Positions 1 through 52,950 of a stretch of 64,000 bases of DNA are shown one piece after another (within the stretch, counting starts at the first letter, position 1; each line of letters starts with the position of its first letter). The stretch covers positions 50,158,001 through 50,222,000 of the forward strand of contig NC_043006.1 in the NCBI RefSeq assembly GCF_006345805.1, written 5' to 3'. Source of the DNA: Octopus sinensis (lineage: Eukaryota). Position numbers and translations under genes: made by a program. The notes under the pieces are model-generated. The model saw nothing but the letters and a program-made list of their open reading frames with translations, made no database searches and was not told the DNA's origin.

Positions 1-215
1 GTATAGTTAATCCAAACATGAATAAAGAGAAAACACAACAACACGAAGACGTGGAACAAGTATAGTGTTATTGGATGCTCAGGAAAAGAAAGAAAGAAAG
101 AAGGAGGATTTAACGTTTCGAGTGGAGCTCTTCGTCAGAAATATAGAAAAAAAGAAAAGTCCAAGGAAGGGAAGACAGAGAAAGAAAATCGTCAACGATA
201 CACACGCGGTGACAT
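1..215 (-). mobile_element. Short non-autonomous repeat carrying a minimal hammerhead-ribozyme core (family A, copy 1; runs off window start)
   Basis: Reverse complement of 3890-4105. Minus strand reads attt-CTGACGA-a-GAGC-tcc-ACTC-GAAAC-GTT-aaat at about 109-142. Confidence 0.7.
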
Positions 216-522
216 ATTGAAATGCATGTATGTATGTATGTATGTATGTATGTATGTATGTATGTATGTATGTATGCTTACATGTATGAATATATAGTTC
301 ATAGATGAGATTAAGATATTCTCCGTATAGAATACACTCTGTAGTGTCCAAGAGATTTAAACTTGAGTGAGTATAGTAGTTAATGTCGGGATAAGCAAAT
401 TAGACAGATCGAAATATAAAGTATATTAAATACATAAAATGTAAAAAAATGTATATATGTATATATATTATTTGCCTATCTCTACATTTACTTCTATATA
501 TGAATATATATATGTGTGCGTT

Positions 523-555
<33 letters not shown>

Positions 556-869
556 TGTGTGTGTGTGTGTGTGTGTGTGTGTGATGTAAATTACTGCTCC
601 AAAGGGCTCAGAGAACAAATGTTAATTTGAATATAATAAATTGAAAAACACATCATGCTATGTTCTTCTATTTTACTGGATTCCGTCACTCAATGGAGTC
701 CAAATAATTGATGAGCAGCAGACTGCCGAGACCCACCTTTTAGAGTTTAGTCGATAATATCAACTCAAACACTTAATTTCGAATTGATTTTAATGGTTTC
801 TAATTACTGAGTAGCTAAGTTTATAAGAGTCGCTGTTTTTTTAAGGAGAACTTTTCCATATAACTGAAA

Positions 870-1980: not shown

Positions 1981-3005
1981 ACGTATGCATTGTTGTTTAG
2001 CGCCGATCAACTCTAATTGAGCTGAGATATAATCAAAACCATTCCAGAAGTGACAATTCGATCTTTGTGTACTTTCTAGAATTAAATTGTTTACAGTGTC
2101 TGTTGTAGTCCTTTGTCGGACTGTTGTAACGCTCACTCTGCAATAGCAGAATAGTTAGATAGAAAAGACACGACTACCCCTCTATGACCGACTACCTCCG
2201 ACGACTGCTCGAGGTCACCGTATTTGTAGCGACTTTCACATACCACTCGTCACATGTGAGGAGTGTTCTATTATTACTATTATCCCTGTAACAGTGTCCT
2301 ACTTTTTAAAAAGACAGGTGAGCGATTTGAAGGAAATTCAGATCGTGCAACTACATAAATGCACCCACGTTCACTCATCTTTTATAGTGTTGAGTGAGCC
2401 ACGCTTATTATTATAGTCAGCCCACCGCAGCTGCAGCATAATACGTATCAACCATGTACATTGTATAGTCAGTCGACTATGCCACAATATCCGCCAAACA
2501 CGCGAAATCATTTTTAATAAATTATAAAATGTAATTAGAATACTTTCTTTCATAAAATTCTGGTTACATCTTCCATTTCATTTATTTACAGAATAAAGCA
2601 AACATTTGCCAGTGAGTGTACCTTTACGTGATTGCTCAACCGGCTATCTAGAAACAGCCTACAAATTGCTCGCCTATCATATTTCAACCGTTTCATATAA
2701 GACAATATGTCTTGAAGCCTTGTGACCATATAACTGCTCAATCAAAGCAGATATGGACAAACAACATCAACTACTACAACAGCAGTTTTTTTTTACCGAC
2801 GCAAACATTTTTATAAATATGGTTCACCACCAAATAGACATTAAAATGGTCAAGACAGAAAATATCGATCTTTTATTGGCGTCGAGGGAAAGCAAAGAAT
2901 ACAGATTGAATACAAATGAAATACTTATTGAAAGACAGAGATCCAAGGAAGAATATATAGTGTGCTATCGACCTTTGTGTAGCAACATTAAAATGTATTA
3001 CATCA

Positions 3006-3082
3006 ATTCGGCTTTCAGTCTTATCTTTTACAAAATCGTGCAGTGATTTAAATAGGTGTCTACATTTCTCTGCGTTATAGTG

Positions 3083-3084
<2 letters not shown>
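3006..3084. repeat. 79-bp unique sequence with an exact inverted copy at 4398-4476
   Basis: attcggctttcagtc...ttatagtgaa is the exact reverse complement of ttcactataacgc...gaaagccgaat. Confidence 0.95.
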
Positions 3085-3123
<39 letters not shown>

Positions 3124-3275
3124 GTGTGCGTGCGTGTGTGTGTGTGTGTGTGTGTGTATGTATGCATGCATGCATGTATGCATGTATGTATAAAACGCAC
3201 TGGAACCTATGATCTTTTAAATGGCGGTGTTTCAGTGTGGTCAAAGCCGTCGGGCTGGAGCGCAAAAAGGAACAC

Positions 3276-3312
<37 letters not shown>

Positions 3313-3366
3313 CATACATACACACATACATACATACATACATACATACATACATACATACATACA

Positions 3367-3397
<31 letters not shown>

Positions 3398-3817
3398 GTA
3401 TATATATATACTTTATTGATAAACATACAATATTCTCTTCCACCACAATGAGGAAATAGTGGGTCGATCTGAATAGTTTAAGCCTTAAGTGAAAGAACAT
3501 CTATCTGTTGTCAACAGAGAAATTAGCAGAATAAGCTTATAACTATTTACAGTGGGGCACTCGTGTGTATAACTAGCATAACAGTATATGCACTAGCAAA
3601 GTGGTTAATTAATTAATGATGCATTACAAAATATTTCTTAATATGATTTGAAAAGAAATGGATGTTGTAACTTTTTAATAAGCATATTTTAGTCTCGTAG
3701 AGAAATTTAAACATAGTAGCCACGTTACAAGTTAAGTTTTCACAATATAGTGAAGTGAATGAAGTAATTAATATTGCTCTGCTCAGTGCTGTTGTAAAAT
3801 TTGAAATGTAATGTCTA

Positions 3818-3879
<62 letters not shown>

Positions 3880-3889
3880 CTCTCTCTCC

Positions 3890-4105
3890 CTTGACCGCCT
3901 GTGTACCGTTGGCGATTTTTTTTCCTCCGTCTTCCCTTCTTTGGATCTTTCCTTTTCCTATGTTTCTGACGAAGAGCTCCGCTCGAAACGTTAAACCCTC
4001 CTTCTTTCTTTCCTTTCCTGAGCGTCCAATAATACTATACTTGTTCCACGTCCTCGCGTTGTTGTGTTTTCTCTTTGTGTTTTCATGTTTGGATTAACTA
4101 TATAT
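3890..4105 (+). mobile_element. Hammerhead-core repeat, family A copy 2
   Basis: gttt-CTGACGA-a-GAGC-tcc-GCTC-GAAAC-GTT-aaac at 3962-3996; ends in (TA)n. Confidence 0.75.
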
Positions 4106-4115
4106 ATATATATAA

Positions 4116-4315
4116 CGCCATGATAGACCGTTAGCTCCTACACGCATTTTTTTTCTTTCCTTGTTTCTTTTCTGTGTATCTTTCTGTCGAAGAGCGTGGG
4201 CTCGAAACGTAAAAGACTTGTTCTATTTCTATTCCTGAGCGCCATACTAATACATTTGTTTGTTTGTACTCCACCTGCCTTCGTCTTTTGTTTATTTTCG
4301 TAAACCTTCCCGTTA
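4116..4315 (+). mobile_element. Hammerhead-core repeat, family B copy (CTGTCGA core variant)
   Basis: tcttt-CTGTCGA-a-GAGC-gtgg-GCTC-GAAAC-GTA-aaaga at about 4179-4216. Homologous to 12660-12866, 18712-18895, 25440-25652 and 63790-63950; ends in (TA)n. Confidence 0.7.
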
Positions 4316-4318
4316 TAT

Positions 4319-4391
<73 letters not shown>

Positions 4392-4397
4392 TATATA

Positions 4398-4472
4398 TTC
4401 ACTATAACGCAGAGAAATGTAGACACCTATTTAAATCACTGCACGATTTTGTAAAAGATAAGACTGAAAGCC

Positions 4473-4476
<4 letters not shown>
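4398..4476. repeat. Inverted copy of 3006-3084 embedded inside a (TA)n tract
   Basis: Exact reverse-complement match, with (TA)n on both sides (4318-4397 and 4477-4523). Confidence 0.95.
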
Positions 4477-4526
<50 letters not shown>

Positions 4527-4649
4527 GTGCCAAGGGAGAAACGTTTGTACGTAGGGGATATGTGCGTGTGCATTACGCATGTTTACCTGTTTGCGTGTGT
4601 GCATATCCATGTCTGCAAATACACACTACTTATCACTGCATGTAGTATT

Positions 4650-6660
4650 ATAATTTTTTTAAAAATAAGTTTTAATTTCATATATAATGTGAATATTTTA
4701 CTTCTCCATCACGTATTCTTTCTATTACTTGTTACAGACAAGTTTTCAGCAATTTATTTCAATAACATTTTTCTCTTATATGTTTGCTTATATGGCATTT
4801 CAATGAGAAAAGTTTACCACAAAGACTTACATTATTAATGAGGTTATCTATAAAATAAACTTTGACAATTAATAACGAGTAGATTTTTCCTTTGGGTATA
4901 ATTGTGGATTACAAGATAACTCATAATATTTTCGTGCAAATTTCACTCTGATCATTTTTTTTCTTCTCAAGTCTGTATTCATCTGCGATTTACAAGTGTA
5001 TTCATGTTTCACGTGGAATAATCTCTTACATATTTTGCGTTCATGTTTTTGTTTTCCTTTGCATATTCATTTATCAACTTCAGATATTTAGCAGAAATGT
5101 TTCGCTTAATCAAGAGCACATTTGTAGATTACATGATGTGAATTAAAAAATATATATTTTCTCTAACATTTACTTGGTAGACAGAATTTTTCATGTTTCG
5201 CACCTGAAAAGCTGTGTACATGTCTCTGCTGTTGCCTCATATTTTCCAGTGATAAGACTTTTCGGCATTGCATAATTTTTAGTGAACTACAGTTTTAGTA
5301 AATTACCAAAGATAGATTCTCCATATATTTCAGAATGAAAAAAAAAAAAATTCCTTCGCTGCTTGTTCTTTCGTGTTTGATTAAATCATTATTATTGGCA
5401 AAATATTTTCTACCATAAATAATAATTTTCCCTAGTGTATATTATTCTTGTGATATATTTTAATCTCCAGTGTGACTATGTTTGTGCATAAAACGTTTCA
5501 AAGTATCAAAGGAAGTTTATTCATTCCATATTTTACAATATGTGTGTATTACATTGTCTTTCCAAACTACTATTGGGTTGTCCGGAAAGTTCGTGCCGAT
5601 TTTTAATGGAAAGAAAAAGGTCAATAAAGACTTGCCATTACATTTTTAATCTACCAAATATGAAACATTTTGTTGCACAATGCGTCTCCAACTTTCCTTT
5701 AATTTGAAAATACCCTCTTCCCAGAATTGAGGCGGTTTCATGGCAAAGAATTCATCAAGCTATCTTTTTACGTCATCCAAGGAATTGAAATTTTTACCAT
5801 TAAGACTATTCAGCAGGGACCTGAATAAGTGGAAATCCGAAGGAGCAATATCTGGTGAATATGGAGGGTGGAGTAACACATCCCAGCCGAGCTGCAGCAA
5901 TTTTTGTCTGGTTCCCAAAGCTTCAAGTGCCGAAAATGAACTTTCTTATCTTCCATTTTAAAGGGTTATAAAATTAACACAGGTTATAGGAACATAAATC
6001 TTCTTCCACGGAAAGATAGCTTAAACTAAATGGAGGTGTAGTCAAATCCTATTTTATGGACTCAACCATGTTCTAAAATAAGTCGAAAGGTAAGCTACTA
6101 TAAATCAGCATGAACTTTCCGGACAACCCAATATTTCATAGCGGAAATTTTTCTTCAGTGAATATTCTCTTGTTACTTCAAGATGATAATTATCAACGAA
6201 TGACTTTCCAAATATTTTACGATAATAGGGTTAAGATTTTTTGCATAATTCACAGTGATAGGAGTTTTTTTTATCCAAAATAATTCGGTATGTGGATAAG
6301 AAAAGTTCAACTGGTGAAATATCTATTACATGTTTTATTGTGGAAAGATGTATGTAACTTTGTACTATGCTAAAACATTATTGGAGATAAAATATTTCTC
6401 ACATATTTCGCAGGGACATGTCTTTTTCTCCGGTGTGACTACGTATTCTCAATGAATGATTTCCACATACTTCATAGTGGAAATGTTTTTTTCCTCAGCG
6501 TATCTTATTTTGTGGTAAATTACTTTTACTGACAAAAGGTATCTTACATATTTCACATTGAATATATTTGTATACTCATAACTGAATCCATATTGATAAA
6601 ACTTGTTGTGACCTCGTGATTAATGATCTCCACATAAATTCTAGATGAATTCTTTAAAAA
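4650..6660 (-). pseudogene. Decayed tandem C2H2 zinc-finger array, split by a mariner insertion
   Basis: Minus-strand fragments: CEICKIPFVSKSNL (~6500-6545), SHTGEK then PCEICEKYF (~6400-6440), YHCELCKKS (~6235-6262), PYYRKIFGKSF...KRIFTEEK (~6150-6230) and MHKHSHTGD (~5463-5490). Many stops and frameshifts. Confidence 0.75.
5573..6131 (-). mobile_element. Internally deleted mariner element (559 bp) with TIRs and TA target-site duplication
   Basis: Left TIR TTGGGTTGTCCGGAAAGTTCGTGCCGATTT pairs with right AAATCAGCATGAACTTTCCGGACAACCCAA. TA at 5571-5572 and 6132-6133. Minus strand keeps the N-terminal MEDKKVHFRHL and the C-terminal LGWDVLLHPPYSPDIAPSDFHLF. Confidence 0.92.
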
Positions 6661-9440
6661 GGGGCATTATCTGCGACTCTTATCTATTAGAGTTCAGTTC
6701 CTAGACTTGGATATCATAGACGTTTTATATGTGTGGAAAATAAGCCGTGTAGAAATAAATGTTGATTTGTTGAATTTTGTAAAAAAAATACTGCATTGCA
6801 CGATTTCTTAATTCGTATTCATATTTCCATAATGCTTTATACAAAATCTTTCACGATAAATTGAAATGTGCAGACGTGTCTGTTATGATTGTTGAATAAG
6901 AAACTCGCGGGTTATATTTGAGCAACAAAGTAGAGAAAATAAGATTTGAAAACGCATTCAAGAAAAAACAAATATCAATTTTTCTTTCCGAATAAGATGC
7001 TTTGGCTGTCGCGGAAGCTGTTCTTATAGTCAGGAGAGGCGATTTGCTTCACCTTTTTACCAGTGAACATTTGTGAAGCAAGAACGTGTTGGAGAGACAG
7101 TAGTTTGTCATGTGCAAACTAGTGCCACAGGCAGTGAATGTCGAAAGGATGATTCTAAAATATTCCGCCCTCAATATTTATTTATTTCTGTATGGTAAGT
7201 AGTGTTAATTGGAAATATTATATAAAATCATTGCCAGTTAATCATTGTTTTTTTTTATATAAATAATCCTTCGATTATTCTCACACATAACGACACATAT
7301 TGGCACACTCACTTATTCAAATATATTGGGAAAAGTTTTTCTTTTAGACGTGTGATGAAAACAACTATGTTTATATTTTAACATCATTATAAGTTTTTTT
7401 AAAAAAATATTTTCTGTCTTTTTGTATTTGTACCTTGCAGGTCGTTTGGATGAAAAATGTTCCGAAACTCCTCCAGTGTTGAAAATGTTACTGACGTTTG
7501 TAACAGCCTCCTTTATTAGAAGTGAATGGGATTTGTGTATACTTTGAGGCGAGATTTCGAAATTTGAGGATTTCATTTTTATGTCAGTCATTTACATATA
7601 TTTTGTTTATGACGTGTATATACACATATATATCGTGTACATGCCATGTATATGTTGCAACTGTGTTGTGTTGCGAGTAATACTATCAGTAATCATATGC
7701 TTTTGTGTGAAATTCTATATGATATAGCTGTATTATCCACTATTTGTTTTCTAATCAAGTTTTGGTTGAAGCTGAGTTGCATCGTGTATTGCAATTGCTT
7801 CTTGTTTCAAGCACGCGGTGAGCTTACGAGAGAGTATTTCGCGCGTATGCATAATGTAACAGTAAATATAACAAAGTATAAAACTTCTCTTTTAAATCAA
7901 ATCTATTTATTTCATTGATCATTTGTGGCAAGATCTTCTTAGTTTATATATTGCTGAAAAAGGAGAGTTTTATTTTAGCGATTTTGTTGCACATTATTCG
8001 TAGTAGTAGTAACGTTTGGTTCGGTGCGATACTTTTTGCATTTATTTTGGTTTGGTGCAGTGTATGTTGTGTTCCATTCTATGAGATCATTTTGATGATG
8101 TGTTCTTTTGTTATATCGGTTAGTATGCAATTAATTCACACACAGGATTGATTGACTTAACGATCTAATTGGTTACACGTTTTTAATCGTTAAATGAAAG
8201 ATCCCTAAGTAATACCATAAATGATGGTTATGTTCACGCCGATAAGATTTTACATATGATATTTTTAAAAGTGTTAAATAATAGACAATAAAATAGCAGT
8301 TTTGCTACAACCGATGAATTAATGCATCTTACATAAAATTTATCAATTTATCAATATTATCTTGCTGCCATTATAGTCATATCTTTTCTTCGTAAACCAT
8401 AAGAACCGTTAGATCTACTAAGATCTGTGGCAATCTTTCTCCTTTGATCCAGATTTGAATACACAGCCCTTTAAGAGTGAAAGAATAAACAAGAGATTCT
8501 TGCTCATTCTTTCTCCTTATTTGGTCTCCTTCTTCAGCTTTTACATAATGTTCTTCCATTTCATGATGCCTTCGTTTGAAAGATCTTGTTCATGTAACTA
8601 AAAGAAATCAATTATGTAATTCATAAAAACATCAAGATAGAATTGATTAGCAATATCAACGATTGTTTCCATTTTATTTAGAACAATATCTAAGGCTCTT
8701 CAAATCCTGAAAAAGTGTCAATAACTTGAGAGCAGAAGTTCTTTCAAACGTCATTCTTATTTTTTCCAGGCTTTGTTTATTGATTTTACTGCACCTAACA
8801 CACTGAATGATTTTCCAAAATTCTTTCACTCACAAATACGGTATATTAGCTGATATAAAGTGTACCGAAAATAATATGCTTTGAATGTTGAAACAACACT
8901 TTGGCCCATTGTTTGCAAAGGTAGTGTTGTATTTGGCCCCACAAACATTAATATCTATCTAACATTTAATTGAAGATTGTGGATTACAAGATATATCTCA
9001 TTAGCGTATGAAAAAGAATCAGGCATTCACTTTCTGTTTGGTAATTATAATGTCTTTAATTGTCTTGGTATTTTCCACAAGATCTTAACTTACAATTATT
9101 GTCTTTAGTTGCTTACAATAAATTCAAACAATCATTATTTACTTTAAAATGTTGTCTCGATGATTTGTCTTTTGTTATGTGACTACGTTTTGACATACGC
9201 TTCGAAGTATACGGTTTTCTCTACATTAACAATTTGTGATTATATTTTATTATATTTTACTATTATTTCTCCAAACTGTTTCCCGAACAAATTTACTGCT
9301 TCAATATCGGTCCTCGTAGCTACTCCCTGCACCATTGCATTATAAAAACAGCTTGTTTTTATATCTATAAAGACAGTCACCTTCCTCCTGTTTTGAAGCG
9401 TATTAATGATAGATAAGTATTTAACACAAATAACGGCTTA

Positions 9441-11166
9441 CAACCGTGGGAAAAAGTTTAGCACCACCGAAGTTTTCGAGTGTTTTAAAGGATACATCCT
9501 TGATATTATTGCTAACGATAATATTTACTTAATGTTATTAAAATAGACAATAGTTTTATCCTTGACCTTGTTTACAAAGTAGCAGTGTTTACTTTTGCAA
9601 CTAATGTTAATAATATGTGGTATTTAGATTAATGGTGTGTTTTGTCTGGTAGTTACCTAATTTCAGGTAAATTGCATTCTTGTCCCAGTTGTATTTGTAA
9701 TTTCTTTTCATATTTATTGCTAGTTTATAATACTTTTGTTGCATACCAGTGCGTAAATAGCTTGTTCATTTTTTTTGCCTGTACATTTTACATTTGGACA
9801 ACTTTTACAAAGAATGCTGTGGGCACTGTATTGTACAAATATAGTCCATGCACGCGAGCTTTTTATATAGCAATTGTATTTTCTTTTTTACATATTATTC
9901 ATTAATAGTTTAAGCCCTTTTGCATATATTCATTATCTTTTTGCACATGCTGTACATGTGTAAACATTTTCTAAATCTATATGTTTACTTTGCAGAATGG
10001 GATGAAATAGTGAACTTTTTTGTGAAGTCCGTGCACAAATCATTGCTCTTCATGATGAAAGATTTTCATGCCGAGCCATAACCTCTCGACTAAATTACTA
10101 CAGTTGTTAGAACAATTAAAAGTATGTTGAACAAGAAAACTTTGAAAGCAGATCCAGAAGTGAAAGACCAAGCGTTTTTACTTCATATCAGACGAGAACA
10201 ATTAAACGTTTGGTTGCCGAAAATCTCCGGCTAACATCTGCTGGTAGATATCCGAAAACATCTGCCTGGTGCAACTACATCAAGAATAATAAGTTGCCAA
10301 CTACCAGAACAATTCGGAATTTGTTGTTTAGGAAACTGAAATTGCGTGCCAGACGGCCAGCTCGAAAACCACTATTGAATGAACGCAAGTACTGCAAGTG
10401 GACAGTTCAACAATGGAAGCAAGTTCTCTTTTCAGATGAGCGCACATTCCAGCAGTTTGGGGCATAATGTTAACTGGGTTCGTAGACCAGTTAAGTGTCG
10501 TTTTGTGCCCAAATACATCGTCTCTACGAGGAAGCACCCTGTCAGCATAATGGTTTGGGGTTGTTTTAGCTGGTATGGAGGTAGAAGATTTTACTTTCTA
10601 CAAAAGGGAAGAACTGTCAATTCCAAGATCTATCAAGAAGTCATGGAAGAAAAAATGCTTCCATGTATGGAGAGTCACTAGACGACTATTTTCCAGCAAG
10701 ATAATGCTCCTTGCCACACCTCAGAAACAATGAAGGCATTCTTCCCCCGAGCAAAGATCAGTGTTATAAGATGGCCCGGCAAGAGCCCGGATATCAAGCC
10801 TTTTAGGAAACCTTTGGTTGATTATGAAGAAGAAAGTTTCTTCTAAACATCCTCCAAACGTTGAAAAATTGAAGGCATCCATAAAGGAAGTGTGGGTCAA
10901 AGAAATTGATCCGGATGTTTGTCGTAGGCCGGTACAGAGTCTGCTGACACTTCTCGAAGAAATTATTTGAAACAAAGGCTACACTACCAGATACTGATAT
11001 GTCTAGAAATTGTACTTGTAATAACGTTTTTAGTGTTATTCATTCATGGTGCTAGCTTTGTATTTGCAGAAATGTTTGATTTTGTGATAAAATGAAATGA
11101 TTTACGTCTTGTGTTATGTGTTTTTGATGAAAATTAAAGGTGGTGTTAAACTTTATTTCATAGCTC
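9441..11166 (+). mobile_element. Tc1-like DNA transposon, transposase inactivated
   Basis: 28-bp imperfect TIRs (CAACCGTGGGAAAAAGTTTAGCACCACC vs reverse complement GAGCTATGAAATAAAGTTTAACACCACC), with TA at 9439-9440 and 11167-11168. Motifs RPARKPLL, WKQVLFSDE, KHPVSIMVWGCFS, IFQQDNAPCHT and WPGKSPDI. Confidence 0.92.
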
Positions 11167-11334
11167 TACATCAAAAACTTGTTCAATCCATTTACTACTG
11201 AAATTAGATATATACTCTCAAAATTTCATTACTCTTAACTACTGTAAGTAGTTTTATATAAACAATACATTTTTTTGTTGAGAAATGTCATGTTCGAAGT
11301 TCGAACCTACTTTTTGTAGAGATACCGTTTACTT

Positions 11335-11726
11335 TTTCTTTGATCTTTTGCATGTTTCAGTCATTAGACTGTGGCCATGTTGGTACACCGATTTGAAGGG
11401 TTTAGTCGAATAAATCGGCTCCATTACTTTTTTTCTTTCTAAACCTGGTACTTATTCAACCGGTCATTTTTTTGTCGAACTGCCAAGTTACAAGGACGTG
11501 ATCAAAACGACATCGGATGTCAAGAGGTGGTGAGTGACAAATACACACACAAACACACACACAGGACGAGATTCGATTAGTTTCCATCTACCATATTCAC
11601 CCACAAGACTTTGGTTGGCCCGGGGTTATATTAGAAGACACTTGGCCAAGGGGCCATACAGTGGGATTGAACCCGGAACCATGTGGTTGGGAAACAAACT
11701 TCTTACCACACAGCTACACTTGTGTC
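11335..11726 (-). mobile_element. tRNA-derived CORE-type SINE (family A, octopus OK/OR-like)
   Basis: Homologous to 46964-47380: tRNA-like head, CCTTGG(G)CAAGTGTCTTCT core, central (CA)n and a ...TGACTGAAACA... tail. Confidence 0.8.
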
Positions 11727-12659
11727 TGTTTATTATATTACCGAGAATATTGAGGCAACATGACTTGCAGAAAATAACAACTCTATTTCTTGGTAGATCT
11801 TCAACATCATTACTGGAATAACCATGACATTTAATTTCGCAGTTAAATGGCTAATCGTTACGAGAATAAAACTGAATACTTCATTATTATGTACTCTCGA
11901 AGATTGCTGCATAGTCTGTATACTTCTATATTTTTGTTCAGATATTTTTCTTTATCAATAAACATTTTAGATACAGTTGACTAAACCATACAAAATTTTA
12001 AAGATAAATCTTTAACGGTTTTCCAGTCCTTTCGATTAAATTATGATCTTGTATTTTGTTTCTAGAGTTTATTGTTCCCATTTCTTTATACTATCGATAG
12101 CATTTCATACCATACTAGTTTTTTCGCTTGGGCCTAATAGAAGGGTGAATTAATTCAAGAGTTTTAAACAAAGGAGTAGTGGAGAGTTTGTGAACGCAGT
12201 ATGAGCATATGACGTCAGCAAGCAAGCAAGCTTAATAACTGGCTAAAAGTACGAACTCTCACGAGTATATTATCGATGTGTATTGAAGCAATTGAGCAGT
12301 TAAATGAATGGTTAACAATTATTTTATGCAATTAACTTTTAAATTATTATCATTATGATTAAAAACGTATGAAAGCAGGTGATTGTTAAGCGAAGTAATG
12401 ATGTAGTACACTTTGTATATGACCTGCGTATTTCTACTAGGCGTAATGTCTGATATATTTGTTGCGCTATATTTATGCTTGTATTCTCTTGTGCCTTAGG
12501 TTACTGGTCTGTTAGAATAAATAATGTTCATTAGTGTATAATTTACTGTGTCGATTTCTAATGCAACTTGTAAATAAAATCGCCAATAAGTTGTAAAAGC
12601 AGAATCTATTCAAAACTGACTGGTTTTTAGTGGAACACTCATTCAAATACCCTCACAAT

Positions 12660-12866
12660 CATATCGCCATGCTAGATCGGTAGCCACTACACACATTTGT
12701 TTCTCTCCTTGTTTCTCCTTGCTTTTTTTTTCTGTGTCCCTTTCTGTAGAAGAGTGTAGACTCGAAACGTAAAAGACTTTTCCAATTCCTGAGCGTTATA
12801 CTGATACATCTGTTTGTTTTGGACACTACCCGTCTTCGTCTTTTGGTTTTTTTCATGAACTCTCCT
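12660..12866 (+). mobile_element. Hammerhead-core repeat, family B copy
   Basis: CTGTAGA-a-GAGT-gtag-ACTC-GAAAC-GTA-aaaga at 12744-12776; ends in (TA)n. Confidence 0.7.
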
Positions 12867-19972: not shown

Positions 19973-20084
<112 letters not shown>

Positions 20085-20169
20085 ACCTAATATCCGAAGA
20101 TATATCGATATATTTATTTATCTATCTATTATTTTTTCTTATATGTACATTTTTACTTGTATATTTTTA

Positions 20170-26685: not shown

Positions 26686-26835
26686 ACGAGGGAGTGCTGA
26701 AAAGTTCCCGGCTTTAAGATTATCGTGAAAGCCTGGCTGGCGGCACAACCTTCGGAGTTCTTTTACAGGGCTAAGAAAACCTGACGAACCGCTGCAATAC
26801 GCATGAGAATCTGAAAGGGGAATATGTTGAATAAA
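26686..26835 (+). mobile_element. Mariner fragment (TIR start plus transposase C-terminal tail)
   Basis: TACGAGGGAGTGCTGAAAAGTTCC terminus, followed by a decayed reading ending GEYVE*. Confidence 0.6.
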
Positions 26836-26922
26836 ATTTTCTATGTTTGGGTTTATTAGCCGGTAATATACTTCGAAGATACTTGGAAGGAATTATTTCC
26901 TCGTAAAAAAGAAAATATTCCT

Positions 26923-26985
26923 GAAAAGCTCTACTTTGTAATCTGTCCTGTCTGTTTGCAGCCTTGTGTGGCTAATAAAGAAACG
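26923..26985 (+). mobile_element. Tx1-like LINE copy 0: diverged 3'-terminal about 60 bp
   Basis: GAAAAGCTCTACTTTGTAATCTGTCCTGTCTGTTTGCAGCCTTGTGTGGCTAATAAAGAAACG matches the other 3' ends with several mismatches. Followed by (TATC)n 26986-27094; its 5' flank is not a microsatellite. Confidence 0.8.
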
Positions 26986-27000
26986 TATCTATCTATTTAT

Positions 27001-27094
<94 letters not shown>

Positions 27095-28388
27095 GTGGCG
27101 AACACGTACATCGCGTCCGTCATCTACTACCGCCTGACCGTCGTACCTTGTCCTGACCCTACCATCACCAAACTACAACGCATTCTCTTTCGCTTCTTGT
27201 GGAAAGGATGCGTCCCGATGGTCAGGCGATCCATTTGCTGTCAACACCCGTTAAAAGGAGGGCTGGGCATGCCGTGGTTGATGATGCGCAGACACGCGCT
27301 GAGACTGCAACATCTCTGGCTCTATGTAGACGACGGTGAACAGGTGTGGTCGCCGTTTGTGAGGCACGCTTTCCCGCAGCTCGTCTCCATGACCGAACTG
27401 CAGTCGTGGATCAAAAAGAGGCCGAAGAAGGGCGAATGGCACCGCGAGTGTCGCGTTGCTCTCAAGCAACTCTGCCGTCCTGGGCCGACCTTGAGTGACT
27501 TCAACACAACCAAAGCATTCTATAGGGGTTTAGTGGAGGGGAGGTACGACGACGAGCTCGGGGCGAACCTGGACGTCGACGAGGAGTACCTGACCCGCCT
27601 GTTCAGGACGACTTTCGGGCCAGGGTTCATGGACAACTTCCAGAGATCCCTGGCCTGGCAGTGCTACCGAGAAACGCTACCCGTTCGGGATAAGCTCTAC
27701 AGACACGGCTCGAGAAACACGGGGCCGACCTGCCCGAGATGCGGACAGAGCGACGAAACCGTTCTGCACGCACTCGTGCAGTGTCCAACAATTTCCGACC
27801 TGTGGGCTTATGTCGAACAACTGCTGTCACGTGTGGGACGAGTCGGTTTATCAGCTGAGTCTATCGTCAATATTGTCACGCCTCCTTCCTTCAAACAGGA
27901 AGGAAGAGCTATTTTCCTCATCCTTGTGGCTATGGCGAAAGAATGTATCTGGTGGACGCGTCTGAAAGGATTGGAGACAAACACTTTCCTCTCTGGTCAA
28001 TCTCTCATCAACTTCTACAAGTACCACTTGAAAAGGAAAGTGAGAGTAGAGAGGCAAGTTTTGTCTAGCGAATGTTTTAAAAAAAGATGGGTGAATGTAG
28101 CAAGAATGGCACGTATGAATGACGAAGCCACCTTGAGCATGATCCTATGAACCCAGAAATTGAAAACAGAGAGTTGCTTATTCGCAAAAAAAAAAAAAAA
28201 AGAATTTTTTTTTTTCCTCTCCCCCTTTTTTTTTAACCCTCCGTTTTTTTGTCCTCTTTCTCTCCTTTTACGATCCCTTTTGATCGAAATTCCCCCTTCC
28301 TTTTTTTTTTTTTAAACCTTCAAAAGAAAAGCTCTACCTTGTAATTTGTTCTATCTGTGTGCAGCCCTGTGTGGCTAATAAAGAAACA
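27095..28388 (+). mobile_element. Tx1-like LINE copy 1, 5'-truncated in ORF2, with an approximately 135-bp 3'UTR deletion
   Basis: Near-identical to 32304-33724, and open reading to the ORF2 stop at 28150. Confidence 0.97.
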
Positions 28389-28467
<79 letters not shown>

Positions 28468-28472
28468 GTATC

Positions 28473-28503
<31 letters not shown>

Positions 28504-28547
28504 CTATTTCTCAGTTTGTTTACCTGTCTATCTATTTCTCAGTCTGT

Positions 28548-28607
<60 letters not shown>

Positions 28608-29880
28608 TCGTCCTGCATGGAACTCCAAGGAATATATCAGTTGGGGAAACAAATTTGGTACAGTCCAAGTACGTTTCCTCAACGAAAGTTTAGCAAAACG
28701 TTTTTCCACATTGGAGCTGCATTCGGACGACTTGGTAATGATACCAGTCTATTTAAACAAAAGGGTCACGAAAGTCCAAATAAAAAACATACCACTTGAA
28801 GTCGAAACACAATGGTTGGTCTCTGCCATCTGCTTTGAAATGACAGAGACAATGTCAGAGACAAACATCCTTGAAATCGCGGTTCTAGGAGAGAAAGACT
28901 ATGTGGGCAAATCAATCGAATTCCTGCTTCAATTGGATGAAGCAGCAAGAGAGAAGATACCCACCGCTATAGAACTGCCAGGAGGCTACAAACTCTATAT
29001 AGTGGTAGAGGGCAGGCGACCACGCTGCTATTTGTGTGGAAGCGAAACACACTTGAAAAAGACGTGCCCAACCACTGCACACCAAGAGCAACAACAACAA
29101 CCACTACCACAACCAAAGCACTCCGGGAAAAAAGCTCTACTACCCACACCACCATCAACACAGAAGACGACAAGAGAAGCACACCAAGCTAATCCGTCAT
29201 CAACCAAAAACCACTCAACACCTGAAAAAATACCAACACCACCAACAACAGCAAAACCCAAAGGAACAGAAAAACAAAGAAAACACACACAAACTGATCC
29301 CCCATCCCTTATACCGCACTCAACACACACAAACACTCAACAACCAACAACAACGAAAACAACAACACAACCACTTACACAGACATACATAGAAGCCCAC
29401 AACATACCCCTACCCCCTACTGATTCCTCAGAAATTTCGTCGGAAGACGAAACCAGTGAGGAATGGCAAATAGCTACAAAAAGAAGGAAAATAAAGAGCA
29501 GAAACACGAACAAAGCAGGGGGAAATACATCTCACGAAGACATTTCAAAACCCAACGCAAACAACAGCCACACCAACACCACAAAAATATATACAGCAAA
29601 CATGCTCAAAGCTATAGACACCAAAAACACAAATTTGATGGAATACATCCAATCAAAAACAAACATAACAGAAGATGACATAAAAACAAACAATCACCCA
29701 TACACACCACCACCAGACCACATCAAAATATTACACATCTCCAAAAGTCTGCACCACACACTCAAAGGCATTTTCCCCAGCGCGGTTGGTAAATGCCAAA
29801 AATATCTCACAAAGAAACTGTACTGGGATCTCCTCGAGGACAAACCAAAGGAGGGGAAAGCAAAAACTTTCGAGCAGTAA
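28608..29880 (+). CDS. LINE ORF1 (gag-like nucleic-acid-binding protein), probably N-terminally truncated
   Basis: About 424 codons with no stop. Contains an RRM-like segment ([12 protein letters not shown]), a CX2CX4HX4C knuckle ([14 protein letters not shown]) and a T/P/Q/K-rich tail. Confidence 0.85.
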
Positions 29881-29924
29881 GTAACCCTCTGTTCCTTTCA
29901 CTTGTATTCTAATTCATTAGGACT

Positions 29925-32900
29925 ATGATCAAGATTGGTTGTGTAAATGCGCGTGGCTTGGGGTCCCCTTGGAAACAAGGGTACCTCTTAAATGACATAA
30001 AGTCACATAAGTTAGAAATCATAGCCATAAGTGAGACCAGACTCCACAATCCGCGGGCCCTAAAGACCATGTTTGGCGGACAGTTCAACATTTTTTTCCC
30101 CCTGTCTGCCGAGAATGGGCGGTAGTGGCACCGCGGTACTTTTTCACAAGAGTCTGGATCTCAAAGTAAGGACAATATTCGTAGACCCGGAGGGTAGACT
30201 GGTCGTCCTGGATGTCGACGGCAGCAATGGGTGCGCTTTTCGACTCGTATCAGTCTACGCACCGCCCTTAACAGGTCGGGCGGATTTCTTTCAACGTCTA
30301 GAAGTATTCTTGGGAACGTCTCGTCCTTTACTCTTAGTGGGGGATTGGAATGCTACCTTGGACACGCATGTAGACTACGTGGGTAGAGATAGGAATAGAC
30401 GGGGATGGAAATGCCTCAGAGACCCGCTCAGACGCTTTCAACTGTCTGACAGGTTCCGACTAGACCACCCGAATGCGCCAACGTGGACATGGAGCAACCG
30501 CATCGGGTCGTCGAGATCGTATCTAGATAGGATACTGTGTAGGACAGTAGACAGAGATAGCATAGGATGTCCACAATTCCACATAGTCAGCTACACGGAT
30601 CACAAACTTGTGACATGTACGCTAGACTTAGGTAAGACACTTAGGCAGGGTCCCGGATACTGGAAACTAAACGCGTCTTTCCCATCGAGACAGGTTTTCA
30701 GAGACCGGATTAGCACACTAGTAAAGAGGGCTTTGACGGGAGCCATCATCAACAACAAATGGTGGTTTGCCCTCAAGAGAGCAGTAAAAGCAGAAGCGAT
30801 TAGGTACAGCAAAGCACTAGCCATAGATAGAAATAGAGTAGAGGGTGAGCTAGTTAAGAAGCTAGAAGAGGCAATTAGAAGCGGCATCGCATCCGACGTT
30901 TTGGCGGCGAGGTTGGCCCTCGACCAACACTTCAACGCCAAACACGAAGGATGTGCTGTCAGAGCTAGGATGCGTGCTCTAAGGAACAAGGTGTTGGAGC
31001 CGCGAGAGAGGCCCGGGTGGCAGAGGCGCAACAGGGCAACAAAGCCACCATTCGGTCCCTGGTAGATGAACAGGGGCGCGAATTGCTCGAGCCAAGTAAA
31101 ATGTGTGAGGCCTTTCAGCAGCATTTTGCCCGACTGTTCGGAACGAGTGGAGGGCAAGAACGTAGGGTGGACTTCAGTGCCTACCTACATAGCCTACCAC
31201 GACTCTCGACAAGAAAGGCAGGGTGCTGCGAAGGTGCCATCACGGCGGCGGAAGTGCAGGAAGCGATGGCAGAATGCTCGAGGGACAAATCACCGGGTTG
31301 GATGGTCTACCCTACGAGCTTTACAATTGTATGCCAGACTTGTTTGGAGATCTCTTGGCGGCGGTGTACTGCAACTGGCAGCAAAACGGGAGCATTCCTG
31401 GTTTTGTGAGCCGAGGAGCCGTAACACTGCTGAAGAAAGATCTAAACAAGGGAAATGTAATAGATAACTTTAGGCCCATCACTCTGCTTAATGCAGACTT
31501 GAAAATTTTGGCCAAGGTGCTAGCCAAGAGGTTGGCGCTTGTCATCGAGAAACTGGTCGACAGAGCGCAAACATGCGCCGTGCCAGGCCGGACCATCCAT
31601 GACAACCTCCACCTGATGCGCTACATCATAGACAGGGTAGTTAACGAACCTGGCATGGGTGGGGCGCTGATCAATTTGGATCAATCGAAAGCTTTCGATA
31701 GGGTGGACCATCGATACTTGGAGGCGGTCCTCGGAGCGGCTGGCTTCGGTCCCGTCTTCCGCGGGTGGATAGCCGCTTTGTACAGAGGCATCCGTTCGGT
31801 AATTCGCGTGAATGGACATCTATCGAGACCCTTCGACATCGCACGTTCGGTCCGTCAGGGATGCCCCCTCTCGTCGCTTCTATACGTATTGACTCTCGAG
31901 CCATTATTGCGGAAGCTGGCAACCTTGAGAGGCATCCCGCGAGAACTGGGATGCGGGACGAACGTGTCTGCATACGCGGACGACGTCACCGTCATAGTGT
32001 CTAGCCACGAGCACATCGAGCAGGTCGGCGAGACACTGAAAAACTACGAAGCGGTGACAGGAGCGAAAATCAACCGGGAAAAGTCAGTGGGCTTGCGACT
32101 AGGCACCTGGAGAAGCAAGCCCATGCCGTCCACCAGCGCCTCCGTCGTGGGACGCTGGACCGACGGCCCGGTTGAGTTGCTCGGGGTCTGGTTTGGTCCG
32201 GACCTCCAAGTGGAGAAGAACTGGAACGAGATAACGAGTAGGGTGGTCACTCTCGCCCGGCAATGGGCCGAGAGGAAACTGTCCCTAAAAGGTCGGGCGG
32301 AGGTGGCGAACACGTACATCGCGTCCGTCATCTACTACCGCCTGACCGTCGTACCTTGTCCCGACCCTACCATCACCAAACTACAACGCATTCTCTTTCG
32401 CTTCTTGTGGAAAGGATGCGTCCCGATGGTCAGGCGATCCATTTGCTGTCAACACCCGTTAAAAGGAGGGCTGGGCATGGCGTGGTTGATGATGCGCAGA
32501 CATGCGCTGAGACTGCGACATCTCTGGCTCTATGTAGACGACGGTGAACAGGTGTGGTCGCCGTTTGTGAGGCACGCTTTCCCGCAGCTCGTCTCCATGA
32601 CCGAACTGCAGTCGTGGATCAAAAAGAGGCCGAAGAAGGGCGAATGGCACCGCGAGTGTCACGTTGCTCTCAAGCAACTCTGCCGTCCTGGGTCGACCTT
32701 GAGTGACTTCAACACAACCAAAGCATTCTATAGGGGTTTAGTGGAGGGGAGGTACGACGACGAGCTCGGGGCGAACCTGGACGTCGACGAGGAGTACCTG
32801 ACCCGCCTGTTCAGGACGACTTTCGGGCCAGGGCCCATGGACAACTTCCAGAGATCCCTGGCCTGGCAGTGCTACCGAGAAGCGCTACCCGTTCGGGATA

Positions 32901-33358
32901 AGCTCTACAGACACGGCTCGAGAAACACGGGGCCGACCTGCCCGAGATGCGGTCAGAGCGACGAAACCGTTCTGCACGCACTCGTGCAGTGTCCAACAAT
33001 TTCCGACCTGTGGGCTTATGTCGAACAACTGCTATCACGTGTGGGACGAGTCGGTTTATCAGCTGAGTCTATCGTCAATATTGTCACGCCTCCCTCCTTC
33101 AAACGGGAAGGAAGAGCTATTTTCATCATCCTTGTGGCTATGGCGAAAGAATGTATCTGGTGGACGCGTCTGAAAGGATTGGAGACAAACACTTTCCTCT
33201 CTGGTCAATCTCTCATCAACTTCTTCAAGTACCACTTGAAAAAGAAAGTGAGAGTAGAGAGGCAAGTTTTGTCTAGCGAATGTTTTAAAAAAAGATGGGT
33301 GAATGTAGCAAGAATGGCACGTATGAATGACGAAGCCACTTTGAGCATGATCCTATGA
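29925..33358 (+). pseudogene. LINE ORF2 (APE endonuclease, reverse transcriptase, zinc finger), about 1144 aa if three 1-bp indels are corrected
   Basis: GCVNARGL, AISETR, SVYAP, VGDWNA, YLDRIL, TDHKLV, SPGLDGLP, NFRPITLLN, LDQSKAFDRV, VRQGCPLS, AYADD and CPRCGQSDETVLHALVQC. Frame changes at about 30095 (+1), 30988 (-1) and 31297 (-1). Confidence 0.95.
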
Positions 33359-33724
33359 ACCCAGAAATTGAAAACAGAGAGTTGCTTATTCGCAAAAAAA
33401 AAAAAAAGAAATATAACATGTGACTCCATTGACCGAGGTTACCGTGGTCTTTTCCGTAGGCTTTTCTTTCCACGGGTAAACCTCACCTGTCCTCCCCTTT
33501 ACACTTCATATTGACATTTCTGTGATAACGATCCCTATTGATCAATTTTTTTTCCTTTCCCCCTTTTTTTTTAACCCCCTTTTTTTTGTCCTCTTTCTCT
33601 CCTTTTACGATCCCTTTTGATCGAAACTCCCCCTTCCTTTTTTTTTTTTAAACCTTCAAAAGAAAAGCTCTACCTTGTAATTTGTTCTAACTGTGTGCAG
33701 CCCTGTGTGGCTAATAAAGAAACA

Positions 33725-33814
<90 letters not shown>

Positions 33815-35049
33815 ACTGCGACATCTCTGGCTCTATGTAGACGACGGTGAACAGGTGTGGTCGCCGTTTGTGAGGCACGCTTTCCCGCAGCTCGTCTCCA
33901 TGACCGAACTGCAGTCGTGGATCAAAAAGAGGCCGAGGAAGGGCGAATGGCACCGCGAGTGTCGCGTTGCTCTCAAGCAACTCTGCCGTCCTGGGTCGAC
34001 CTTAAGTGACTTCAACACAACCAAAGCATTCTATTGGGGTTTAGTGGAGGGGAGGTACGACGACGCTCGGGCGAACCTGGACGTCGACGAGGAGTACCTG
34101 ACCCGCCTGTTCGGGACGACTTTCGGGCCAGGGCCCATGGACAACTTCCAGAGATCCCTGGCCTGGCAGTGCTACCGAGAAGCGCTACCCGTTCGGGATA
34201 AGCTCTACAGACACGGCTCGAGAAACACGGGGCCGACCTGCCCGAGATGCGGTCAGAGAGCGACGAAACCGTTCTGCACGCACTCGTTCAGTGTCCAACA
34301 ATTTCCGACCTGTGGGCTTATGTCGAACAACTGCTGTCACGTGTGGGACGAGTCGGTTTATCAGCTGAGTCTATCGTCAATATTGTCACGCCTCCTTCCT
34401 TCAAACGGGAAGGAAGAGCTATTTTCATCATCCTTGTGGCTATGGCGAAAGAATGTATCTGGTGGACGCGTCTGAAAGGATTGGAGACAAACACTTTCCT
34501 CTCTGGTCAATCTCTCATCAACTTCTTCAAGTACCACTTGAAAAGGAAAGTGAGAGTAGAGAGGCAAGTTTTGTCTAGCGAATGTTTTAAAAAAAGATGG
34601 GTGAATGTAGCAAGAATGGCACGTATGAATGACGAAGCCACCTTGAGCATAGTCCTATGAACCCAGAAATCGAAAACAGAGAGTTGCTTATTTGCAAAAA
34701 AAAAAAAAAAAAAAAAAAAGAAATATAAAATGTGACTTCATTGACCGAGGTTACCGTGGTCTTTTCCGTAGGCTTTTCTTTCCACGGGTAAACCTCACCT
34801 GTCCTCCCCTTTACACTTCATATTGACATTTCTGTGATAACGATCCCTATTGATCAATTTTTTTTTCCTCTCCCCCCTTTTTTTTTAACCCCCCCCTTTT
34901 TTTTGTCCTCTTTCTCTCCTTTTACGATCCCTTTTGATCGAAACTCCCCCTTCCTTTTTTTTTTTTTTTTTTTTAAACCTTCAAAAGAAAAGCTCTACCT
35001 TGTAATTTGTTCTATCTGTGTGCAGCCCTGTGTGGCTAATAAAGAAACA
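33815..35049 (+). mobile_element. Tx1-like LINE copy 3, 5'-truncated
   Basis: Near-identical to 32512-33724 with private substitutions and small indels; followed by an interrupted (TATC)n at 35050-35509. Confidence 0.97.
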
Positions 35050-35080
<31 letters not shown>

Positions 35081-35120
35081 TTCTCAGTCTGTTTACCTGT
35101 CTATCTATTTCTCAGTCTGT

Positions 35121-35208
<88 letters not shown>

Positions 35209-35321
35209 TTCTCAGTCTGTTTACCTGTCTATCTATTCTCAGTCTGTTTATCTATATCTATCTATCTATCTACTATCTATCTATCTATATATCTATCTAT
35301 CTATCTATCTATCTCTATCTA

Positions 35322-35384
<63 letters not shown>

Positions 35385-35431
35385 TCTCAGTCTGTTTACC
35401 TGTCTATCTATTCTCAGTCTGTTTATCTATA

Positions 35432-35509
<78 letters not shown>

Positions 35510-35838
35510 GTGACTTCATTGACCGAGGTTACCGTGGTCTTTTCCGCAGGCTTTTCTTTCCACGGGTAAACCTCACCTGTCCTCCCCTTTACACTTCATA
35601 TTGACATTTCTGTGATAACGATCCCTATTGATCATTTTTTTTCCTCTCCCCCCCACTTTTTTTTTTTTTTTTTTTTAACCCCCCTTATTTTTGTTCTCTT
35701 TCTCTCCTTTTACGATCCCTTTTGATCGAACTCCCCCTTCCTTTTTTTTTTTTTTTTTTTTTTAATACCTTCAAAAGAAAAGCTCTACCTTGTAATTGTT
35801 CTATCTGTGTGCAGCCCTGTGTGGCTAATAAAGAAACA
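35510..35838 (+). mobile_element. Tx1-like LINE copy 4, 3'UTR only
   Basis: Starts GTGACTTCATTGACCGAGG and ends AATAAAGAAACA; followed by (TATC)n 35839-36053. Confidence 0.95.
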
Positions 35839-35897
<59 letters not shown>

Positions 35898-35969
35898 ATC
35901 TATCTATCATCTATCTATCTATCTATCTATTTCTCAGTCTGTTTACCTGTCTATCTATTTCTCAGTCGT

Positions 35970-36001
<32 letters not shown>

Positions 36002-36053
36002 TCTATCTATCATCTATCTATCTATCATCTATCTATTATCTATCTATCTATCT

Positions 36054-36409
36054 AAAAAAAAAAAAAGAAATATAAAATGTGACTTCATTGACCGAGGTTA
36101 CCGTGGTCTTTTCCGCAGGCTTTTCTTTCCACGGGTAAACCTCACCTGTCCTCCCCTTTACACTTCATATTGACATTTCTGTGATAACGATCCCTATTGA
36201 TCATTTTTTTTTTTCTCTCCCCCCCACTTTTTTTTTTTTTTTTTTTAACCCCCCTTATTTTTGTTCTCTTTCTCTCCTTTTACGATCCCTTTTGATCGAA
36301 CCTCCCCCTTCCTTTTTTTTTTTTTTTTTTTTTTAATACCTTCAAAAGAAAAGCTCTACCTTGTAATTGTTCTATCTGTGTGCAGCCCTGTGTGGCTAAT
36401 AAAGAAACA
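36054..36409 (+). mobile_element. Tx1-like LINE copy 5, 3'UTR only
   Basis: Starts in the internal A-run and shares diagnostic variants with copy 4; followed by (TATC)n 36410-36477. Confidence 0.95.
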
Positions 36410-36477
<68 letters not shown>

Positions 36478-52711: not shown

Positions 52712-52950
52712 AAACGGTGAGCTGACAGAAACGTTAGCACGGCGGGCGAAATGCTTAGTGGTATTACGTCTGCCGTTACGTTCTGAGTTCAAATTCCGCC
52801 GAGGTCGACTTTACTTTCATCCTTTTGGGGTCGATAAATTAAGTACCAGTTTTGCACTAGGGTGGATGTAATCGACTTAATTCGTTTGTCTGTCCTTGTT
52901 TGCCCCCTCTATGTTTAGCCCCTTGTGGGCGATAAAAAATAAGAAATAAG
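52712..52950 (+). mobile_element. SINE family B, full length, ending in a GCCC-cttgt-GGGC hairpin and GATAAA
   Basis: tRNA-like head (GGTGAGCTGACAGAAACGTTAG; GAGTTCAAATTCC B-box) and an (AAATAAG) tail. Confidence 0.85.

Follow-up and report, generated by a model that had tools for sequence, protein, structure and literature searches.

The array and its six copies

A 64-kb window of the Octopus sinensis genome (contig NC_043006.1; the window is the whole stretch of DNA analysed, and positions are counted from its first letter) contains six copies of one long interspersed nuclear element (LINE), numbered 0 to 5, which lie head to tail on the plus strand and are each followed by a (TATC)n microsatellite (Table 1). 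The longest copy (copy 2, 5117 bp) served as the reference and was compared with the window using BLAST; the copies are mostly 5′-truncated, and 0 matches were found on the other strand. All six share a common 3′ terminus, …GGCTAATAAAGAAAC(A/G) (= …TGTGTGGCTAATAAAGAAAC(A/G)), which continues as TATCTATC…, and the 29-mer TGTGTGGCTAATAAAGAAACRTATCTATC occurs six times in the window, always on the plus strand, and in 0 of 100 shuffles. Tracts of 27, 55, 22.5, 113.5, 55.5 and 20 TATC units were reported behind copies 0 to 5, respectively, by Tandem Repeats Finder (TRF). BLAST, the 29-mer count and TRF agree on this layout, which had been proposed in a preliminary description of the same DNA.

Every copy runs into (TATC)n in identical phase and in the same orientation. 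If a tail-less end were joined to the repeat in random phase, agreement of all five later copies with the first would have a probability of ∼(1/4)^5. At their 5′ ends, copies 1–5 are truncated at five distinct points (27095, 28608, 33815, 35510 and 36054), as the preliminary description had also noted, and each junction is flush with TATC, with zero filler bases between repeat and element.

Copy 0, only 62–78 bp in length, is the most diverged of the six (88.7% identity to the reference) and the sole copy without TATC on its 5′ side. There it adjoins a mariner-like remnant, itself beside an (AC)n tract, that may have inserted into or beside the 5′ end of the copy. The flank of copy 0 was used as a query against phage sequences and gave no match; a target duplication around the whole array was looked for and none was found. 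Within the 3′ untranslated region (3′UTR), an internal A-run lies ∼45 nt past the stop codon of the second open reading frame (ORF2) (33395–33408, 28184–28207 and 36054–36066). The start of copy 5 coincides exactly with this A-run, and copy 1 lacks reference positions 4801–4938, a 138-bp internal 3′UTR deletion that is private to it and spans from the A-run to a T-run.

Copies 1, 2 and 3 are pairwise 97.1–97.5% identical and equidistant from one another, with 15, 15 and 16 private differences, respectively, over 1081 three-way alignment columns; the amino-acid examples quoted earlier for these copies can be read in the translated ORFs. Copies 4 and 5 have ∼7 derived states in common against copies 1–3, and their mutual differences are almost only in homopolymer lengths. 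The locus holds at least three age layers, namely copy 0, copies 1–3 and copies 4–5. Because the truncation points differ, private changes are present and at least three age layers exist, the data support the copies as separate events. A Jukes-Cantor distance of 0.065 has been equated with about 18 million years in O. vulgaris (PMC13282606), a calibration by which the age of copies 1–3 may be put, as a rough figure, at 4 million years.

The tracts separating the copies are either pure, or nearly so, or interrupted by a degenerate 44-bp block, TATTTCTCAGTCTGTTTACCTGTCTATCTATTTCTCAGTCTGTT, in which the 4-nt period is kept. The block occurs five times in the window, only in the tracts between copies 1 and 2, 3 and 4, and 4 and 5, and looks like old, mutated TATC that was duplicated later inside the tract. 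Its origin as a very short LINE copy or as a derivative of the 3′ flank was considered and rejected: similarity to either was absent, and the TATC period is retained. The coexistence of pure and block-bearing tracts matches the prediction that each insertion leaves a fresh, pure tail together with a remnant of the old target tract, while the repetition of the block indicates that unequal exchange acted within tracts.

Table 1. Features of the array, of same-orientation chains elsewhere, and of related elements (TATC tracts are given on the plus strand; a slash marks the junction between TATC and element; positions of Argonauta features refer to their own contigs)
Feature	Position	Strand	Reference positions	Description
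Mariner-like remnant	26687–26906	+		internally deleted; TACGAGG…CCTCGTA termini; one frame …KGEYVE, then stop
Copy 0	26923–26984	+	5055–5116	62-bp 3′-end fragment, possibly from 26907; ends …GGCTAATAAAGAAACG
Tract, copies 0 to 1	26985–27094			G (TATC)2 TATTTATT (TATC)23 T, nearly pure
Copy 1	27095–28388	+	3696–5117	5′ truncation in C-terminal region of reverse transcriptase; …TATCT/GTGGCG
Tract, copies 1 to 2	28389–28607			in phase throughout; one degenerate 44-bp block
Copy 2	28608–33724	+	1–5117	longest copy; …TATCTAT/TCGTCC
Copy 2, ORF1 remnant	28606–29880	+		RRM-like region plus CCHC knuckle; aligns with ORF1 of relatives
Copy 2, ORF2	start ∼29925	+		MIKIGCVNARGLGS…
Copy 2, APE domain	30073–31065	+
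Copy 2, RT/zf-RVT	31223–33358	+
Copy 2, 3′ terminal box	33699–33724	+		hairpin AGCC-CTGTGT-GGCT (33699–33712), then AATAAAGAAACA; same box ends every copy
Tract, copies 2 to 3	33725–33814			pure (TATC)22 TA
Copy 3	33815–35049	+	3905–5117	5′-truncated; …TATCTA/ACTGCG
Tract, copies 3 to 4	35050–35509			460 bp; three 44-bp blocks, several 1–2 nt phase shifts
Copy 4	35510–35838	+	4813–5117	3′UTR only, sister of copy 5; …TATCTA/GTGACT
Tract, copies 4 to 5	35839–36053			one 44-bp block plus phase shifts
Copy 5	36054–36409	+	4788–5117	3′UTR only; begins 25 nt further 5′ than copy 4; …TATCT/AAAAA
Terminal tract	36410–36477			pure (TATC)17, then unique flank CCATTTATCTGTCTG…
Window chain (46250→44600), start	46250, second copy 46153→45921	−		two copies of another repeat, then (TAT)n
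Window chain, next	45806→45592 and 45458→45244	−		SINE, (ATT)n, SINE, (ATT)n
Window chain, next	ending 45073	−		∼90-bp LINE 3′ fragment (GCCCTTGTGGCCAATAAACGAATTA) plus (ATT)n/(ATC)n
Window chain, last	44950→44737	−		SINE, then a further truncated SINE
Argonauta hians L132 chain	4560–11210	+		SINE, (ATT)3, LINE 3′ fragment, (ATT)17, about three tandem SINE units, full-length LINE, (ATT)5, unique DNA
Argonauta hians L001 element	6888–12652 (6871–12669 with duplication)			full-length; 17-bp duplication TATTTTTAAAATTTGTA; no repeat tail
L003, 3′ end				…GGGCCCTTGTGGCCAATAAAAGAAATC; tail (ATT)n
Argonauta L131/L132, 3′ end				…GCCCTTGTGGCTAATAAAAGAAATA; (ATT)5, then unique DNA
L127, 3′ end				…TTGTGGCCAATCAACACACACA…; contig stops shortly after
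Argonauta box-bearing SINE	L001	−		…GGCAAATAGAGAAATCTAT; degenerate CT-rich stretch, then (CTAT)14 ∼55 nt downstream

Coding content, relatives and the 3′ hairpin

Domains were assigned on copy 2 (Table 1, which includes an RNA recognition motif (RRM)-like region in ORF1). A Pfam scan of the ORF1 remnant gave no hit; that of ORF2 returned Exo_endo_phos (6.5e-12), RVT_1 (9.5e-32) and zf-RVT (1e-7). The closest solved structure to the reverse transcriptase (RT) is human L1 ORF2p (1.1e-34), with R2 at 1e-16, and that closest to the apurinic endonuclease-like (APE) domain is the L1 endonuclease (L1-EN). An APE domain, an RT and a Cys-rich C-terminus in ORF2, preceded by a separate ORF1, are features of the L1 group; on domain content and nearest structures the element is accordingly classed here as an L1-group non-LTR (long terminal repeat) retrotransposon, in keeping with its earlier description as L1/Tx1-type, and it may be of the L1-Tx1 type. 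A recent repeat annotation of O. vulgaris contains 13 recently active families classed 'L1-Tx1' by RepeatMasker-type annotation (PMC13282606). Target preference in Tx1 has been defined as the same sequence type in >20% of flanks (PMC4494074); here TATC makes up 5/6 of the 5′ flanks and 6/6 of the 3′ flanks, at a single locus. Similarly, the mark of a microsatellite-inserted LINE, the same repeat on both sides in fixed orientation, is present in copies 1–5 and absent from copy 0, again at one locus.

Copy 2 is itself 5′-truncated in ORF1, with ∼0.5 kb missing relative to a full-length Argonauta relative, and its ORF2 contains at least three frameshifts, near 30095, 31040 and 31290; the longest copy is thus itself a dead, truncated element. 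Some of the frameshifts fall at homopolymers (e.g. TTTTTTTCCCCC near 30095) and could be assembly errors.

The best protein matches are cephalopod, at 73% identity in GCA_024449705.1 and 72–74% in contigs from two JGI metagenome samples, followed by 64% in Argonauta hians and 38–53% in Acanthosepion pharaonis. No copies above 80% amino-acid identity were found in the collections searched, where a 711-aa piece of the RT matched at ≤73% and a 260-aa C-terminal piece at ≤80%. An exact 20-mer of the 3′ end was absent from the bacterial/archaeal and viral contigs searched, and among the matches listed in a metagenome scan with the degenerate 3′ box (at least 120 stretches) none was related to the element by BLAST/tblastn. 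The 3′ box is retained in the relatives, whose tails are (ATT)n or absent (Table 1). The contigs of the closest relatives (L002, L004 and L130) end before or within the tail.

A box of the form N4-CTTGT-N4′ is common to the LINEs and to tRNA-derived short interspersed nuclear elements (SINEs), both in the window and in Argonauta. In RNA it would form a hairpin with a 4-bp stem and a CUUGU-type loop just 5′ of AAUAAA, and it is seen also in L001, L003 and L125–L132. When 16 LINE and SINE ends were aligned on the loop, 89% of the cells paired versus 70% in shuffles (0/500 reached the observed value). All four stem pairs have changed on both sides, with compensatory variants AGCC/GGCT, TGCC/GGCA, GCCC/GGGC, AGGT/ACCT and GACC/GGTC, and slid controls paired at 16–45%. 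A thermodynamic fold of the 3′ 100 nt was no better than shuffles (z = 0.69), so that the evidence for the hairpin is purely comparative. A shared, covarying hairpin of this kind marks 'stringent-type' LINEs that have SINEs as partners (PMC3747384).

A solitary SINE at 52714–52941 has a 3′ end (…AGCCCCTTGTGGGCGATAAAAAATAAGAAATAAGAAAC) resembling that of the TATC-tailed LINE and carries no repeat tail. Its 5′ flank already ends in AGAAAC, a possible 6-bp microhomology or duplication.

Chains of the same orientation elsewhere

Similar chains recur outside the array. One lies on the minus strand of the window and another in Argonauta hians (the L132 chain); both string together SINEs and LINE 3′ fragments in a single orientation, with ATT-type tracts between some of the members (Table 1). 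The SINE units of the L132 chain were reported by TRF as 2.3 copies with a 157-bp period at 96%, and another copy lies upstream. Such recurrence is consistent with a tendency to insert at the tails of copies already present. Solitary SINE copies exist too (SINE A and SINE D).

Not all of the repetition in these regions stems from insertion. Between 45181 and 45920 of the window, a 348-bp unit, composed of a SINE and an impure ATT tract, is tandemly duplicated with SINE bodies identical at 230/230 positions; this is a recent DNA-level or assembly duplication and not two insertions. Among more distant relatives of the element, two families at ∼45% amino-acid identity (L125/L126 and L128/L129; ENA ERZ21867824) form full-length, apparently intact head-to-tail tandems with periods of 6596 and ∼6820 bp and near-identical junctions. 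Neither a microsatellite nor an Rfam RNA gene was found between the tandem units of these two families.

Formation of the array and comparison with known systems

The array was probably built by successive insertions into one TATC tract, in three or more rounds of target-primed reverse transcription (TPRT), through pairing of tail and target together with a nuclease preferring AT/TA. The RNA of the element would end in the small conserved hairpin, AAUAAAGAAACA and then (UAUC)n. The endonuclease would nick the bottom strand, (GATA)n, with its many TA steps, and the (UAUC)n tail would pair with the freed (GATA)n 3′ end and prime cDNA synthesis, a pairing that would also set orientation and phase. 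Copy 0 would have arrived before copies 1–3 and these before copies 4–5, each new copy being truncated at its own 5′ point and bringing a TATC tail whose register matched that of the tract; fresh TATC would thereby be added each time and the array would seed itself. Slippage and unequal exchange would later have remodelled the tracts.

That the tail equals the target is plausible. Pairing is favoured over a dedicated nuclease specificity because sister families act alike with a different repeat, because the first bases of the site occupied by the L001 element, TAT, continue the element's own end (…GAAATC/TAT), and because SINE D ends …AAGAAAC at a site that already read AGAAAC; these cases are anecdotes, not a test. 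Of the strand-specific targeting of tails put forward in the preliminary description, the common orientation and phase of all copies holds, while a sequence-specific endonuclease is not established, given a relative with a 17-bp duplication and the mismatched tails of some chains. The suggestion that copy 0 was the founder that laid down the tract is unsupported; a microsatellite already present at the site is an equally or more likely beginning, since an unoccupied (TATC)24 lies nearby and the impure tracts hold an old degenerate block.

Several observations weigh against successive, tail-guided insertion. All evidence that the element homes to TATC comes from one locus. The unoccupied (TATC)24, at 19984–20079 (tract span 19973–20089), lies on the same strand 7 kb upstream, showing that TATC tracts occur without the element and are not always occupied; it was also considered as a decayed copy, and no LINE or SINE 3′ box was found upstream of it. 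The L001 relative (64% identical) is inserted at an AT-rich, non-repeat site beside (TA)n/(ATTT)n. Its 17-bp duplication indicates that strict sequence-specific cleavage is not a property of the group, which makes ordinary staggered-nick insertions at AT-rich sites. Some members of the chains have tails that mismatch the repeat they occupy. The equal private-change counts of copies 1–3 also fit a single multi-template event, and the 348-bp duplicate demonstrates that unequal exchange operates in the window. Lastly, the region 35050–36410 contains many 1–2 nt indels and phase shifts, along with homopolymer-length differences in copies 4 and 5, and part of these indels may be long-read assembly error.

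An unlikely alternative that nevertheless accounts for part of the data is a single-event concatemer, in which the RT, within one integration, repeatedly left an RNA at its 5′ end and resumed on the TATC tail of the next, laying down several head-to-tail copies together. It would produce clean junctions, an equidistant set such as copies 1–3 with their equal counts of private changes, and near-identical sisters such as copies 4 and 5. Support also comes from the L001 element, where two 3′UTR modules (ending at ∼12390 and 12652) with a SINE-like stretch between them lie inside one 17-bp duplication, an arrangement suggestive of a template jump or of read-through from a tandem source; multi-module templates or template jumps therefore occur in the group. 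A single integration is, however, difficult to reconcile with at least three age or subfamily layers and with inter-copy tracts of 22–113 units. Three of these tracts hold the old 44-bp block, which an RNA tail would not carry and which argues against tracts built from RNA tails alone. Concatemer formation could explain at most sub-groups (copies 1–3 or 4–5) and not the whole array.

To amplification at the DNA level, in which LINE-plus-tail units would have been duplicated through replication slippage or unequal crossing-over from one TATC tract to another and later deletions would have created the 5′ ends, we assign a small probability. Unequal exchange copies junctions, whereas the five 5′ junctions here all differ and each is flush with TATC; copy 5 extends further 5′ than its sister copy 4, the 138-bp deletion is confined to copy 1, and changes of a subfamily type separate copies 1–3 from copies 4–5. 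These features outweigh what the process would otherwise explain, namely the recurrence of the 44-bp block (three tracts, one of which has it in triplicate) and the tandem of SINE and (ATT)n in the window with SINEs 100% identical.

We likewise give little credence to insertion without sequence-matched homing, in which microsatellites and retroposon tails are general landing pads, owing to an AT-preferring L1-like nuclease or open chromatin, and TATC is merely a tail. Chains do mix non-matching tails (SINE B, for instance, follows (ATT)n), in Argonauta a LINE as well as SINEs sit directly behind the 3′ ends of other elements, and the Argonauta relative occupies its AT-rich site beside (TA)n/(ATTT)n. 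Yet all five later copies at the octopus locus belong to the TATC-tailed family and are co-oriented and in phase, the TATC tracts of the array hold no other retroposon, and dozens of other microsatellites in the window are without a copy of the element. Mis-joining of reads from dispersed copies through their TATC repeats is very unlikely: the long impure tracts, the homopolymer-length differences and phase shifts of 35050–36410 and the apparent homopolymer frameshifts of ORF2 are of the kind it would leave, but it would not yield uniform orientation and phase, and private substitutions, distinct truncation points and comparable chains in an independent Argonauta assembly all contradict it.

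Successive TPRT insertion into one TATC tract can be extended, tentatively and with considerable doubt, to an octopod guild in which L1-type LINEs and their partner SINEs use one 3′ hairpin, with the repeat tail (TATC, ATT, GTT or none) as an RNA-borne address that would pair with the nicked target. If the tail were an address, a change of tail would re-aim an element without any change of protein, and each insertion would plant a new address; retroposon chains tied to microsatellites would result, and the unusual load of microsatellites and SINEs in octopods might in part have the same origin. In octopod assemblies the chains explain why long TATC and ATT tracts with impurities occur in clusters, and such regions are prone both to mis-assembly and to real unequal exchange. 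The locus also offers a tractable case for asking whether the RNA tail or the endonuclease sets the target choice of L1-type elements, which is relevant to LINE-based gene insertion.

Microsatellite homing and landing on tails are already known; what is new is the TATC/GATA repeat and the host phylum. A literature search, in which Repbase was not covered, found no paper that pairs Tx1 with a TATC-type repeat, consistent with the preliminary description, which named no described TATC/GATA-specific mollusc family. Should a census confirm the preference, the short list of microsatellite-homing APE-type LINEs would gain a mollusc host and, in TATC/GATA, a tetranucleotide target.

That list is well founded, as the preliminary description had stated for Tx1 (PMC4494074, PMC3812793). 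Kibi targets (TC)n, Koshi (TTC)n, Waldo and Mino ACAY and AC repeats, and Dong (TAA)n (PMC3812793); crocodilian members of Tx1 insert into (TTCC)n and (TTTC)n (PMC4494074), and Togen, a NeSL element, targets (TG)n (PMC4640811). The octopus element resembles Kibi, Koshi and crocodilian Tx1 in being an APE-type L1-group LINE that is embedded in a simple repeat in a single orientation, its end joined directly to the repeat (Kojima & Fujiwara 2004; PMC4494074; PMC3812793). It differs from them in its TATC/GATA unit and cephalopod host, in a specificity read from one locus, and in its membership of the Tx1 clade, which is putative. Unlike them, it also has close relatives with other tails or none, one of which makes an ordinary target duplication. 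Homing to microsatellites is shared with Dong (R4 clade), Waldo and Mino (R1 clade) and Togen (NeSL) (PMC3812793; PMC4640811), which belong to other clades, some with a restriction-like endonuclease, whereas the specificity proposed for the octopus element would not be endonuclease-based.

A 3′ hairpin followed by a tail of short units links the element to UnaL2/UnaSINE1 of eel, with (TGTAA)n, to the I factor, with (TAA)n, and to one monocot L1 lineage (PMC3747384; PMC3472496). As in stringent-type pairs, the hairpin of the octopus element, with its compensatory changes, is common to LINEs and tRNA-derived SINEs. The tails of UnaL2/UnaSINE1, the I factor and the monocot L1 lineage have not been reported as preferred landing sites, whereas here the tail is the same repeat as the flanking target. 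For R1, SART and TRAS, work from the Fujiwara laboratory reportedly shows that the nicked target pairs with bases at the 3′ end of the RNA that derive from this target. The proposed point of likeness is that complementarity between the RNA 3′ end and the target would fix where, and in which register, reverse transcription begins; R1, SART and TRAS differ in that they also have demonstrably sequence-specific endonucleases and poly(A) tails. L1 and Alu insert into older poly(A) tails, and in the Zepp clusters of Chlorella an earlier tail is likewise a good substrate, giving head-to-tail, co-oriented chains of 5′-truncated copies. The octopus array differs from both in that its tail is a tetranucleotide repeat, and the proposed pairing partner is (GATA)n rather than oligo(T).

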